Origin: Macrostomum hystrix
Lineage: Eukaryota > Animalia > Platyhelminthes
DNA length: 64,000 bases
Assembly (NCBI GenBank): GCA_950097015.1
Contig: CATNEN010000005.1
Span: 1,054,001-1,118,000, forward strand
Reading direction: 5' to 3'
Shown here: positions 27,037 to 34,806 of the stretch, piece by piece
Layout: each line of letters starts with the position of its first letter
How positions within the stretch are numbered: the first letter of the stretch is position 1
Program-made: the position numbers and the translations under genes
The notes under the pieces: generated by a model
Database searches by the model: none
The model's input: only the letters and a program-made list of their open reading frames with translations
What the model was told of the DNA's origin: nothing

Positions 27037-27122
27037 AATTGCAACAATCAATCAAAAAGCTATTTAACTACTGCTTAGCAATTTATTTATTTTTCAGCCA
27101 AAGAGCTCGCAATACTAAACCA

Positions 27123-28518
27123 ATGTCCGACGAAGTCCTACCCGCTGATCACAAGCCGGACAATGCCCCGGCACATTGTCCAGGCGTCGGCAGCGATTCT
27201 GCAGGTCGCGCCGCGCCGTGCGCCGGCTGTCCGAATCGCGGCGTCTGCAGCAGCGGGGCCGGTCGTCAAGCCGGCCCGGATCCAGATCTCGAACGAATCC
27301 GCGATCGTCTAGCCGGGGTCCGGCGAAAGATTCTTGTGCTATCCGGCAAAGGCGGGGTTGGCAAGTCCACTGTTACTGTCTGCCTGGCCCGTGCCTTGTC
27401 ATCGGCGATGTCAACAGATGGCACAGCTGCAGGCGATGAGAAACCAATGCAGGAACAATTGCAGGTATAAAGGACTTTTAACTCACCCCTTTCAGCCCTC
27501 TCTTCCGCCCTTCTAGTCCGATCCGCCCCTCTCTTCCGCCCTTCTAGTCCGATCCGCCCCTCTCTTCCGCCCCTCTAGTCCGATCCGCCCCTCTCTTCCG
27601 CCCCTCTCTTCCGCCCTTCTCGTCTAATCCGCTCTCTTCCTCTCTTTCGCACTATTAGTCTGATCCGCCGTATTCCTCTCTTCCGCTGTCTTCCTCTTTT
27701 CCGCCCTTCTAGTCTCATCCGCCCGTATCTTCCGCCCCTCTATCCGCCCTTTAAGACTGATCCGCCCCTCTCTTCCACTATTCTAGTCTGATCCGCCCCT
27801 GTCTTCCACCCTCTGATCCGCTCCTCTCCGATCTGTTCCTCAGGTCGGCCTACTCGACGTTGACATCTGCGGCCCGTCGGTGCCAACAATGCTCGGCCTC
27901 CTGGGCGAGACCGTCCACCAAAGCGCCGTCGGTTGGTCACCAATCTACGCCGAAGATTCCCTCGCCGTAATGTCCATAGCCTTCCTGTTGTCGTCGCCGG
28001 ACGAAGCGGTGGTTTGGCGAGGCCCGCGTAAGAACGGCCTTATTAAACAGTTTCTTCGCGATGTCGACTGGGGCTCTCTTGACTATCTGGTCATCGACAC
28101 ACCGCCTGGTACAAGCGACGAGCACCTGTCCATTGTTCAGCTATTGAAATCGGCCGGCATTGACGGCGCCATCATTGTCACCACGCCGCAGGAGGTGTCA
28201 CTAATGGACGCCAGAAAGGAGATTAATTTCTGCCGACGCCTTGGCGTCAACATACTCGGCGTTGTGGAGAACATGTCGGGATTCGTGTGCCCGAACTGTA
28301 CACGCAGGTCGGATATTTTCCCAGCCACTACGGGCGGCGCTGCAGCCATGTGCGAAGAATTCGGTCTGCCATTGTTGGCTAAACTCCCGATTGAGCCAGC
28401 TCTAGCTAGGGCGCTGGATAATGGACAATCGCCTGCCGAGGCTATGAAAGATGACGACAGCGAAACTTTGGTTGCTATGCGTTCCCTGGCTCAAATGGTG
28501 CGGCAGATTCTGCCGTGA
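27123..28518 (+). CDS. NUBP1: Cytosolic Fe-S cluster assembly factor NUBP1 (Nbp35), 2 exons: 27123-27464, 27844-28518 (338 aa)
   Basis: N-terminal CX13CX2CX5C ([24 protein letters not shown]), deviant Walker A GKGGVGKS, spliced LQ|[49 protein letters not shown]. Confidence 0.95.
27495..27830. repeat. About 31-bp C/T-rich repeat in the NUBP1 intron (TCCGCCCCTCTCTTCCGCCCTTCTAGTCCGA)
   Basis: Visible, progressively degenerate. Confidence 0.8.
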
Positions 28519-28614
28519 TTCCTTTGGCTTATTTAAATAACTGAGTTTCATCATTCGTCATGACTGATTACACTATAGGCTACGCGTTAGCCGCTGTTAG
28601 ATTACCCTTTCTCA

Positions 28615-29478
28615 TCCGCCATTCTATCCATTCTCCTCCGCCCCTTTCTACCCATTCTCCTCCGCCCCTTTCTACCCATTCTCCTCCGCCCCTTTCTACC
28701 CATTCTCCTCCGCCCCTTTCTACCCATTCTCCTCCGCCCCTTTCTACCCATTCTCCTCCGCCCCTTTCTACCCATTCTCCTCCGCCCCTTTCTACCCATT
28801 CTCCTCCGCCCCTTTCTACCCATTCTCCTCCGCCCCTTTCTACCCATTCTCCTCCGCCCCTTTCTACCCATTCTCCTCCGCCCCTTTCTACCCATTCTCC
28901 TCCGCCCCTTTCTACCCATTCTCCTCCGCCCCTTTCTACCCATTCTCCTCCGCCCCTTTCTACCCATTCTCCTCCGCCCCTTTCTACCCATTCTCCTCCG
29001 CCCCTTTCTACCCATTCTCCTCCGCCCCTTTCTACCCATTCTCCTCCGCCCCTTTCTACCCATTCTCCTCCGCCCCTTTCTACCCATTCTCCTCCGCCCC
29101 TTTCTACCCATTCTCCTCCGCCCCTTTCTACCCATTCTCCTCCGCCCCTTTCTACCCATTCTCATCCGCCCCTTTCTACCCATTCTCATCCGCCCCTTTC
29201 TACCCATTCTCCTCCGCCCCTTTCTACCCATTCTCCTCCGCCCCTTTCTACCCATTCTCCTCCGCCCCTTTCTACCCATTCTCCTCCGCCCCTTTCTACC
29301 CATTCTCATCCGCCCCTTTCTACCCATTCTCCTCCGCCCCTTTCTACCCATTCTCATCCGCCCCTTTCTACCCATTCTCCTCCGCCCCTTTCTACCCATT
29401 CTCCTCCGCCCCTTTCTACCCATTCTCCTCCGCCCCTTTCTACCCATTCTCATCCGCCCCTTTCTACCCATTCTCATC
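28615..29478. repeat. 24-bp minisatellite (CATTCTCCTCCGCCCCTTTCTACC)n, about 36 copies, between NUBP1 and SFMBT
   Basis: Near-perfect 24-bp period; explains the LSTHSPPP and MGRKGRRR ORFs. Confidence 0.96.
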
Positions 29479-29871
29479 TACCTATTTTCATTTTTCTGTC
29501 TTCTACCATTCTATTCTCCGTAACATTTACAATCGTAATCATGTGCTTTGTCAGATCAAGGCAACATTTTAATATTCGAATGCACTAAATATTCAGTTGA
29601 TGATTTGTGAGAAAATTGATTGTTATCTTTGGGTACATCTTTTGCTGATCACTTATTTTAGTATTAGAAATATACCATTGTGTATAAGTGCAATTATCTT
29701 TTTGACCGAACGAATTTTGAGTTATTTTGGATTTATTTTAAAATTAAATAAAAGTCGACTTATTACAAAAACTTTTTCTAAACATATCGGTTATGTATCT
29801 AAAAACGTCTAACTGTCTACTGACTAAACAATCCCTAATAAGTAGTATAATCATCGCCTTATCTGTTGCAG

Positions 29872-32800
29872 AACTCGTCGGAATTAATATCAACGGCTTC
29901 AGCAGCCGCCGTCGCTACGGACGACGATCAAAGCGGCTACCGACAATTCACCTGGGACGATTATCTGCAGAGCACTGGAGCGATCGCTGCAGACTCCGAC
30001 GCATTCCATCATGTTGAGGCTGCTCACGCTAGCCTATGCCGGCCTGGCATGCTGTTTGCGTTGCCATGGCAACGGGACGCCTATTGGCCAGTTCGCATAG
30101 CAACCGTTAGCGGACCATTGCTAGGCCTACAATTTGTTGGCTCCAGTGTTGCTAGGCAGCCAGTTTGGTACAGTATAGCCAGTCGGACGGGCAAATCCCT
30201 TGCCTGGTGCCGCGAAAATCCTCACCTGGTCAGACCGCCGCCTGATCTTGTGTCAGGAGTAGGCGAGGATCTGGCTAGCGAACCCAGCGCCGATGATTCC
30301 GCGGTGTTGAAGAGTCTATTATTAGACAGAGGCGAAGGCGAAGGCGAGGATGCGCCAGCCGAGATGCTTGAGGGCGACGCTTTGCAACCGGCTGAACGAA
30401 TCAAAGAGGGCGGCCTGCTGGAATGTAGCGCTCCGCTCATGCCATACGCGCTGTGGTTTGTTCAGGTTGGAGTTCATTTGCTCACTGGTTTGCACTGCCA
30501 ATTGGTGTACGACATTTGAACAATGTTTTCTCGAGTTTTTCTGAAAATTTTCCACATTTTCCCGTTTTGTTCCACAATAGATTAGATCCTAACCTCTTAA
30601 AATATATTCTCAAATTTATTAGGAATTACTACGATGACAAAAATATCCCAAAATTAGTCGATTTTTTTGTTCAGATATGGCCCCAAACTTGTTAGATATG
30701 GCCTCCCTAAAGTGTCACGTAAATTCATGTAAAAATCACTAACAGGTGCTGAAATTTGTAGATAAAAATATCGATATAATGTCAAATAAGTGTAGGCATA
30801 TTTTCTGAGGTTAATATCCAATAAATGTAGGGATATTTTCAAAGGTTTATTTCTAATACATTTCTGCCTTTTGTGAAAGGCAACTTAATATCTGGGATTT
30901 CTTAATATAGCTCGTATTATTCGTTCGTTTCTTTAAAATGATTTTTTTTTAATTATTTGATTTCTCAAAATGAAAACTTGCGGTTGTTAAACATGCTGTC
31001 GATTCGGTGTTCCATCAATCAGGTCATCAGCAACCGGGGCGGCAGACTGCAGCTTCGCTGGATGGACGATTGTTGTCAACAGATTCGGCCAGGCGGTGAA
31101 GCATTTCACCTGTTCTTCACTAGTCACCGCCTGCATGCATTGGGATTTGGGCTAGACAACAACAGCGATACTGAGCAGCAGCAGCAGCAGCAGCATCAGT
31201 CTTCCCTCGCCTATTTTTATTCGCCTAGTTTTAGCGAGCATAATCGCGTCCCATTCGACAAAGCTTCCAGCCTACTGTCGTCATGGCAACCGGCGTTAGC
31301 CGGCAAATTCCTACGTCCTCACAAGCTCCCACCGCAGCACAGATTTCGAGTGGGTCATCGCGTCGAAGCTGTCCATCCTGGGCACCGGAGGACTGTACAA
31401 CCGGCCACTGTTGTCAAAGTTATTGATCGTTATTTCTTTATCATCGAATTGGATGATTTGAGAACGCCAAATGAGCGAATCAGCGTTCAAAGATTGTGCA
31501 CGGCTGACACCTGCGAGATTATGGCGGCCAACACTTGCGCTTCAAGGTCGTTGCCACTGACGCCACCGCCTGGTAAGCTCCCATTGTCAATTTTAACTAG
31601 CTGTTTTGCTCAGTAGCTTAAATTATTGTTAAAATACGGATACAAATATATAAATATAGGCTAGAAAGGTATAGTGATTAGTCGAGATAGTGACTATAAA
31701 CTAGGGTACTCATTATAAATAAGAATGGGGTAACTATAGATAAGAAATGGGTAATTATAGATAAGAATGGGGTAATTATAGATAAGAATAGTGTAATTAT
31801 AGATGAGAATGGGTAATTATAGATAAGAATAGTGTAATTATAGATGAGAATGGGTAATTATAGATAAGAATAGTGTAATTATAGATGAGAATGGGGTAAT
31901 TATAGATAAGAATGGATGTTTATTATCCTACATGGAAGAAAAGAGTTGTTGTTCTTGAAAAGAATTCAAAGCTACATCCTAACCAATCTTTGCCAGGTCA
32001 CAGCGGCCATTTTACCTGGGCAGGCTACCTATCCAATCTCCCAGCCTCATCAACTGACGGCCAACCAGCCCAGGCGCCCCCAGATTCTTATTTTCAACTG
32101 CCCGACGAAGAATTCGACTTTTGTCTGGGAGAAAAATTGGAAATTGTTAGCCAGGAAGATCCGGCGGACACTCTGGTACCAGCCACCATCACCAGGTTTA
32201 TTGGCAGGCTAATGCAGCTGCATTTGAATCACATGAATCCCTTGGCGCCTCCGATTCTGATCGACATGGGATCAACTAGCTTATTTCACGTTGGCTGGGC
32301 CGAACTGAATGGTCACAAACTGTCGGTGCCATTCTGTTATCAGCAGGTGACTAATTACTTCATTGTTCATTGCATTCTCACATTCTTTATTGGTCATTAC
32401 CTATTCCGATTCTTCATTGGTCATTACCCAATCAGATTCTTCATTGGTCATTACCCAATCAGATTTTTCATTGGTCATTACCCAATCCGATTCTTCATTG
32501 GTCATTACCCAATCAGATTATTCATTGGTCATTACCCAATCCGATTCTTCATTGGTCATTACCCAATCAGATTATTCATTGGTCATTACCCAATCAGATT
32601 ATTCATTGGTCATTACCCAATCAGATTATTCATTGGTCATTACCCAATCAGATTATTCATTGGTCATTACCCAATCAGATTATTCATTGGTCATTTCCCA
32701 ATCAGATTATTCATTGGTCATTACCCAATCAGATTATTCATTGGTCATTACCCAATCCGATTCTTCATTGGTCATTAACCTTATCACATTCTTAATTGGT

Positions 32801-34067
32801 CATTACCCAATCAGATTCTTCATTAGTCATTAACCTTATCACATTCTTAATTGGTCATTACCCTATCTGATTCTTGATTGGTCAATACCCTCTCATATGC
32901 TACTTTTTAGTTCAGAATAAACTACTAAACAAATGAGTAGTATATGCAGCAATGAAAATGCTTTCTCTCTCTCCGGCCCAATCGCAGGCCGCCCACCACA
33001 AGCGGTTGCTAACCAATGTGCATCCGCCAAGCTGGTGCAGCAAAATCTACGTCAACAATCGCTGCCATGTTGGCCCAAGCATATCCAAGAGTTCAGCTGA
33101 CGGCCTACCGAAATCGTTGGGTCCTGGCGACGTCTGCGTCCTCCTAGAAGACCTGATTGGCCGAATAGTGCAAGCAGCGTACAATCCAACCAAAGTTTTA
33201 AAAGACATCGAGCGCGACCCCGAAGAGCCGAGAGAGTCGCTCACTCAGCGACAAATGAAAGCCAAATTCAAGGGCAAATCTTATTCGTCTGTAGTGCAGC
33301 TGTGCAATAACAGCATGTTCTTGGACGAATACTTGAAGCAGTTCTGCATCCGTCTAAAGGCGTGTCCATATTTCGTTAGCGTTTTTCGGCTCAGAAATTC
33401 CTGTCCGCAGACATGTCCGGCTAGGCTAAAAAAACTGCTCACGATTGAACGCTTGCCTAGGAAGAGTCGGCCGCCTCGACTATTGAGACCGAATGCTTCC
33501 ATGGGAGATTTGCCCCAGCTGGAGCAGCAGCAGCAGCATCAGCCTCAGCCGCTAGGCGAAGACGACAGTCTTCAAGGTGTGGGCGACGATGACGACACGG
33601 CTAGCAATCATTCGTCGGCTAACGGCGGAGGCCTTCGAGTCCCGGGTTCCCAGGCTCGAGTCCAGACCCGAGGCGTTCGTTTGCCCAGCTATGCCCTGCT
33701 GGATAAGCGCAGTAAAAGATTGCGCAATGAGCAGCAGCAGCAGCAGCAGTCTTCGGGCGCCCCTTCGTCATCTTACGCTTCTAGCGGTCCGTCGGGCAAG
33801 AAGGCCAAGTCGGCTCCGCCGCTGATCTCAAATCCGTTGCACTGGTCTGTTGAAGAATTACTGTTCTATCTGAAATCTAACACCGACATTTCTGACGACG
33901 TCTGCGAGCTCTTGGTCTCCGAGAAAGTCGACGGTCAGGCTTTTCTGCTCCTAACTCTGCCCACTGTGGAGACTGGACTAGGCTTGCCTTTGAACTCCGC
34001 CGCTCAGCTGTGCCACTGCGTCTGGCAGCTGAAGAAAGCCTTCTTCCAGCAGTTTGCTGGCAATTAA
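29872..34067 (+). CDS. SFMBT1/2: SFMBT-like Polycomb group protein (4 MBT repeats, SLED, SAM), 4 exons: 29872-30465, 31023-31572, 31997-32346, 32988-34067
   Basis: MBT motifs [23 protein letters not shown]...[21 protein letters not shown]...PATIT...[10 protein letters not shown]; SLED-like [12 protein letters not shown]; SAM WSVEELL...[14 protein letters not shown]...AFFQQF. Exons total 2574 nt and are phase-consistent. No in-frame ATG precedes the first MBT repeat. Confidence 0.88.
31715..31912. repeat. About 21-bp repeat (AATTATAGATAAGAATGGGGT) in SFMBT intron 2
   Basis: Visible periodicity. Confidence 0.8.
32385..32880. repeat. 27-bp minisatellite (TTCATTGGTCATTACCCAATCAGATTA)n in SFMBT intron 3
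   Basis: 27-bp period, giving 9-aa repeats in ORF calls. Confidence 0.92.
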
Positions 34068-34198
34068 TCTGCAGCTCTTGCCTGAAATTCTGCTTTTGCG
34101 AACTAGCTGGAAACAAATTAATATTCAACTGCATTTGCTACCGCGATTTCCAAGGTTGCTGATTCGTTGTTTCAAATTTCAGCTCAAATACTGCCTGA

Positions 34199-34806
<608 letters not shown>

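Follow-up and report, generated by a model that had tools for sequence, protein, structure and literature searches.

The 64,000-nt window of Macrostomum hystrix DNA described here contains two neighboring genes transcribed in the same direction, a NUBP1-type P-loop NTPase gene and, to its right, an SFMBT gene (Table 1). The NUBP1 stop codon (28518) and the SFMBT splice acceptor are separated by 1353 nt, most of which is occupied, as the first-pass annotation of this DNA had described, by a 24-bp minisatellite (873 of the 1353 nt, 65%), with 480 nt of other sequence. The SFMBT gene is modeled with four exons that together encode 857 codons plus a stop (the predicted exon 3/4 junction included), and the model reproduces the acceptor (TTGCAG/AAC), the exon beginning at 29872 and the phase-0 frame of 857 codons that had been proposed in the first-pass annotation.

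Table 1. Features of the NUBP1-SFMBT locus. Positions are those of the 64,000-nt window; a slash marks a splice boundary.
Feature	Position	Strand	Description
Last exon of NUBP1-type P-loop NTPase gene	27880..28518	+	Stop codon 28516-28518; Pfam ParA/NUBPL E = 7e-69
24-bp C/T-rich minisatellite	28603..29475	.	36.5 copies, 98% matches (Tandem Repeats Finder); outron or intercistronic region
Candidate cis first exon	29600..29632	+	ATG...TGG/GTACAT, 11 codons (MICEKIDCYLW), in phase; no RNA support
In-frame TAA	29848..29850	+	Shuts the frame, 8 codons before the acceptor; frame open from 29851
SL trans-splice acceptor TTGCAG	29866..29871	+	Pyrimidine-rich tract upstream; SL-bearing contigs join here
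SFMBT exon 1	29872..30465	+	198 codons, phase 0, without initiator ATG; NSSEL..., MBT1, first part of putative MBT2; Pfam MBT match; contig pieces 29871-30461
First AUG downstream of leader AUG	30011..30013	+	Out of frame, A at -3; 29-codon ORF running past 30049
First genomic in-frame ATG	30049..30051	+	Codon 60 of exon 1, in RPGMLF, inside MBT1
SFMBT intron 1	30466..31022	+	GT..AG; absent from RNA contigs; joint 30461/31019, cut +4, in X3, X5, X1
SFMBT exon 2	31023..31572	+	Remainder of putative MBT2, Gln-rich linker, MBT3; Pfam MBT E = 2e-11; contig pieces
SFMBT intron 2	31573..31996	+	GTAAGC..CAG; holds 21-bp minisatellite (Tandem Repeats Finder); contig loose end behind 31574 is the sequence from 31999 onward
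SFMBT exon 3	31997..32346	+	MBT4 (FTWAGYL arm and core); Pfam MBT E = 6e-13; 3′ boundary predicted by junction enumeration
SFMBT exon 4	32988..34067	+	SLED, low-complexity linker, C-terminal SAM, stop codon; 5′ boundary predicted by junction enumeration

Introns 1 and 2 of SFMBT are confirmed by RNA contigs, and the donor of intron 1 (30466-30471) is GTTGGA, departing from the GT[G/A]AG reported as typical for M. lignano. The exon 3/4 junction (CAGCAG/GTGACT ... CAATCGCAG/GCC) is predicted, and is the best among the frame-preserving options. Pfam identifies MBT repeats in exons 1, 2 and 3, such that three of the four repeats are supported by a search tool; the second probably extends across the exon 1/2 junction (LECSAPL..WFVQ/) and was recognized only by inspection, a phmmer self-search for it with MBT4 as the query being too insensitive. 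The repeats are followed by a SLED domain (PF12140, E = 6e-23), and the last 95 residues match the SAM domain of Scm (1pk3; phmmer E = 1.6e-6) over residues 8-82. This SAM domain is missed by Pfam, with no SAM match in the SFMBT C-terminus at E ≤ 1, and is seen through the PDB sequence match alone. For exons 1 and 2 the 4MBT region of Drosophila Sfmbt gives the best PDB matches, with MBT3 as the best for exon 2. A word search with the 198 aa of exon 1, among proteins of 109-346 aa, a range that excludes full-length SFMBT, gave no hit at E ≤ 0.001.

The gene architecture, with four MBT repeats (the second as recognized by inspection), SLED and SAM, is therefore that of SFMBT; in SFMBT and dSfmbt, the PhoRC Polycomb subunit, four MBT repeats are likewise succeeded by SLED and, at the C-terminus, SAM. 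Fly Sfmbt has a long N-terminus, whereas only a short stretch precedes MBT1 in the Macrostomum protein. In vertebrate SFMBT1 the N-terminus before MBT1 is short.

The sequence at 29857-29880 is CCTTATCTGTTGCAG/AACTCGTCG, with exon 1 opening at 29872 (AAC). The hexamer TTGCAG that precedes the exon fits the [T/C]TNCAG motif for which spliced leader (SL) acceptors of M. lignano are enriched (PMC8629364, Ustyantsev & Berezikov 2021), and GC content steps from ~29% to ~57% at the acceptor, as expected of the start of an exon. Translation reveals no in-frame ATG between the TAA at 29848-29850 and the acceptor. The FTWDDYL motif, which the first-pass annotation had placed near the start of the exon as the first MBT motif, is found at codon 26 and lies upstream of the first in-frame ATG (30049, codon 60), itself situated within MBT1 (RPGMLF) as had been stated. 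Solved MBT repeats in the PDB align from exon residues 22-26 onward, the FTWDDYL arm included, so that initiation at Met60 would leave MBT1 without its N-terminal arm. As judged from the sequence, the genome appears to be without any ATG able to give a complete MBT1. Residues 1-25 are of low complexity, and a Met donated by the leader is followed by a 25-residue tail leading to MBT1 and completes no targeting or lipidation signal.

Exon 1 is present in six public RNA runs, and four were aligned over 29476-31700. The RNA evidence consists of assembled Logan contigs rather than raw reads, in which rare variants are dropped and which carry no information on isoform proportions, true 5′ ends or strand. 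A junction between the leader and the acceptor is present in intron-less contigs from three runs and two studies, which read ...CTGCGAAGACTCAATTTATTGCATG/AACTCG.... Runs X3 and X5 (organism C, study P2) each contain a single contig, of 2755 and 2759 nt respectively, that includes exons 1 and 2 without intron 1 and continues into exon 3, with 24 loose letters, CTGCGAAGACTCAATTTATTGCAT, directly before 29871; run X2 (organism B, study P1) contains a 152-nt contig with the last 22 of these letters in the same place. The loose ends (...GACTCAATTTATTGCAT and ...TTATTGCAT) are followed by the G at 29871 and then by AACTCG. This G fits both the AG of the acceptor and the final G of the leader, so the RNA reads ...TTGCATG/AACTCG and corresponds to the published leader joined at 29872.

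The 35-nt M. lignano spliced leader, CGGTCTCTTACTGCGAAGACTCAATTTATTGCATG, has ATG as its last three letters (PMC8629364), and the 24-25 leader letters visible in the contigs are identical to it; the AUG-ending leader anticipated in the first-pass annotation is thus found in the RNA, with letters matching the published leader ending in ...TTGCATG. The leader is present on each of the three contigs extending to the acceptor. The RNA contig reaches ~157 nt beyond the SFMBT stop codon, and the 2755-nt length corresponds to 24 nt of leader, a 2574-nt coding sequence and ~157 nt of 3′ UTR, suggesting that these contigs represent essentially full-length mRNAs. A search of the 64,000-nt window for an SL RNA gene with the 3′ 21 nt of the leader, allowing ≤3 mismatches, gave 0 matches. 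Trans-splicing of the SFMBT acceptor at 29871/29872 to the Macrostomum spliced leader is confirmed at the RNA level, and the SL-bearing RNA at 29872 that had been set beforehand as a check on this locus is present as leader-joined contigs in three runs.

The last three bases of the leader form its sole AUG. No AUG precedes it in the mRNA, and it reads in phase 0 into the SFMBT ORF; no stop codon intervenes in ATG/AAC TCG and the ORF remains open for 857 codons. In the proposed mechanism, the SFMBT pre-mRNA would be trans-spliced at 29871/29872 to the 35-nt Macrostomum leader, the terminal AUG of the leader would land in phase 0 immediately before AAC TCG, and this AUG would initiate M-NSSEL..., an 858-aa protein whose domains are four MBT repeats, SLED and SAM. 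We consider it highly probable that this account is correct as a whole, with the leader trans-spliced in phase, its AUG serving as the initiator of the 858-aa SFMBT, and the genome holding no ATG for a complete MBT1. The leader AUG is both first and in frame, the two AUGs that come before the in-frame codon at 30049 (30011 and 30036) lie out of frame, and the MBT1 arm lies before Met60, making the leader AUG by far the likeliest initiator. We infer that ribosomes start there, in which case full-length SFMBT depends on trans-splicing. Of the earlier proposal that the SL AUG plus AAC TCG gives M-NSSEL..., the junction is present in RNA and is in frame, and initiation and SL dependence are its probable consequences.

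A genomic start codon would exist if an upstream ATG exon were cis-spliced to the 29872 acceptor in a substantial share of transcripts. Nine in-frame ATG.../GT candidates lie between 28519 and 29871, flatworm acceptors are often common to cis- and trans-splicing (PMC12582326), and the non-consensus GTTGGA donor of the confirmed intron 1 indicates that weak donors are usable. However, none of the nine has a GT[GA]AG donor or is covered by an RNA contig, in keeping with the view of the first-pass annotation that the gap holds no convincing ATG exon. Contig depth is zero over 29476-29850 in all four runs, including the candidate exon ATGATT...TGG/GTACAT near 29600-29632 that had been singled out as the kind of exon that would speak against a leader-donated start; the GC content of the region (29%) is as in introns, and the contigs that do reach the acceptor all carry the leader. 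A substantial contribution from such an exon is therefore very unlikely. A minor cis-spliced isoform of SFMBT may exist, and a rare one could escape detection because the contigs drop rare variants.

The mRNA could alternatively be trans-spliced and the leader AUG skipped, with translation beginning at Met60 (30049) or a non-AUG codon and giving an N-terminally shorter product. The leader AUG has a T at -3 (TTGCAUGA), a pyrimidine that makes the context weak by vertebrate Kozak rules and some leaky scanning conceivable. It is also just 32 nt from the cap, which is of the trimethylguanosine type in SL RNAs in general, and this too counts for an internal start, as does the low complexity of the first 25 residues. 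A ribosome that skipped the leader AUG would nonetheless meet the out-of-frame AUGs at 30011 (A at -3) and 30036 before 30049, and the ORF opened at 30011 overlaps 30049; Met60 is inside MBT1 and past the conserved FTWDDYL arm that aligns to solved MBT repeats, and the leader AUG is documented as an initiator in Schistosoma. An internal start is thus improbable, and it is scarcely credible that the SL-exon junction itself is an assembly chimera with the true 5′ end elsewhere. Thousands of transcripts share the leader in the de Bruijn graph, the evidence is in the form of Logan contigs, and only 22-24 nt of leader are attached, but the identical junction is present in three runs from two studies, lies precisely on an AG acceptor conforming to the published SL motif, and coincides with the GC step. 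A stub of 24-25 nt is, moreover, what a shared 35-nt leader would be expected to leave in a k=31 graph.

To our knowledge, all reported flatworm leaders end in AUG, and we know of no published leader-AUG case that includes SFMBT; a search of the flatworm literature found no mention of SFMBT in the context of an SL-donated start codon. Cheng et al. 2006 demonstrated a requirement for the leader AUG in more than 40 S. mansoni cDNAs (cited in PMC9851317 and PMC12582326). The Schistosoma type similarly has an AUG-ending leader, a phase-0 acceptor and an ORF without an AUG of its own before conserved sequence, and as in that type the leader of SFMBT would give the cap, the 5′ UTR and the start codon. 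Schistosoma is a trematode with a different leader sequence, whereas the host of this SFMBT gene is a free-living macrostomorph in which initiation at the leader AUG is probable. With M. lignano the leader is identical over its visible letters and the acceptor motif is shared, and SFMBT is a conserved gene, a class enriched among the trans-spliced genes of M. lignano. The Macrostomum SL likely contains its final ATG as a start codon, and this ATG was left untrimmed (PMC10468722, Wiberg et al. 2023); the M. lignano papers (PMC8629364, PMC10468722) contain no analysis of which genes need the leader AUG. SFMBT is a new example of an SL-donated start codon, and the mechanism is one already known in flatworms, such that knowledge of it is unchanged by this case.

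In annotation, gene finders that ignore the leader AUG would either cut SFMBT to Met60, destroying MBT1, or invent an upstream exon, and other genes of the Macrostomum genome are at the same risk. SFMBT is an RNA-supported chromatin regulator in a transgenesis-capable flatworm model, and its full-length translation should require trans-splicing.

The arrangement of the two genes raises the question of an operon. In M. lignano, operons are recognized by a same-strand neighbor at a repeat-adjusted distance of <1 kb and a downstream gene that is trans-spliced (PMC8629364). The NUBP1-SFMBT pair has this organization, with a repeat-adjusted distance of 480 nt and a trans-spliced SFMBT, and because 480 nt is below the 1-kb threshold a polycistronic NUBP1-SFMBT precursor is plausible. 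The contigs leave the outron uncovered between 29476 and 29850, a result with no bearing on rare precursors. It is a tentative possibility, and one that we would not favor, that SFMBT sits second in an operon of two genes, lacks a promoter, cap and start codon of its own, and relies on the SL for all of its expression after transcription. If this were so, the output of a PhoRC Polycomb subunit could be switched by the efficiency of trans-splicing in stem cells, in which trans-splicing is reported for 85% of specific genes.

The non-coding parts of NUBP1 and SFMBT are largely tandem arrays (27500-27810, 28603-29475, 31712-31915, 32378-32890 and ~34190-34800). The NUBP1 intron contains C/T-rich repeats of the TCCGCCCCT type, similar to the 24-bp intergenic unit; minisatellites with units of 21 bp and 27 bp lie in introns 2 and 3 of SFMBT respectively, and a long (CTGT)n array begins just past the SFMBT 3′ end. 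Neither AATAAA nor ATTAAA is present within 180 nt after the NUBP1 stop or 330 nt after the SFMBT stop, which is uninformative. NUBP1 has an SL-type acceptor of its own, TTTCAG/CC (27097/27098), located 25 nt before its ATG (27123). Leader splicing at this position would create, from the leader AUG, a 7-codon upstream ORF whose end (27116-27118) lies 4 nt ahead of the NUBP1 ATG.
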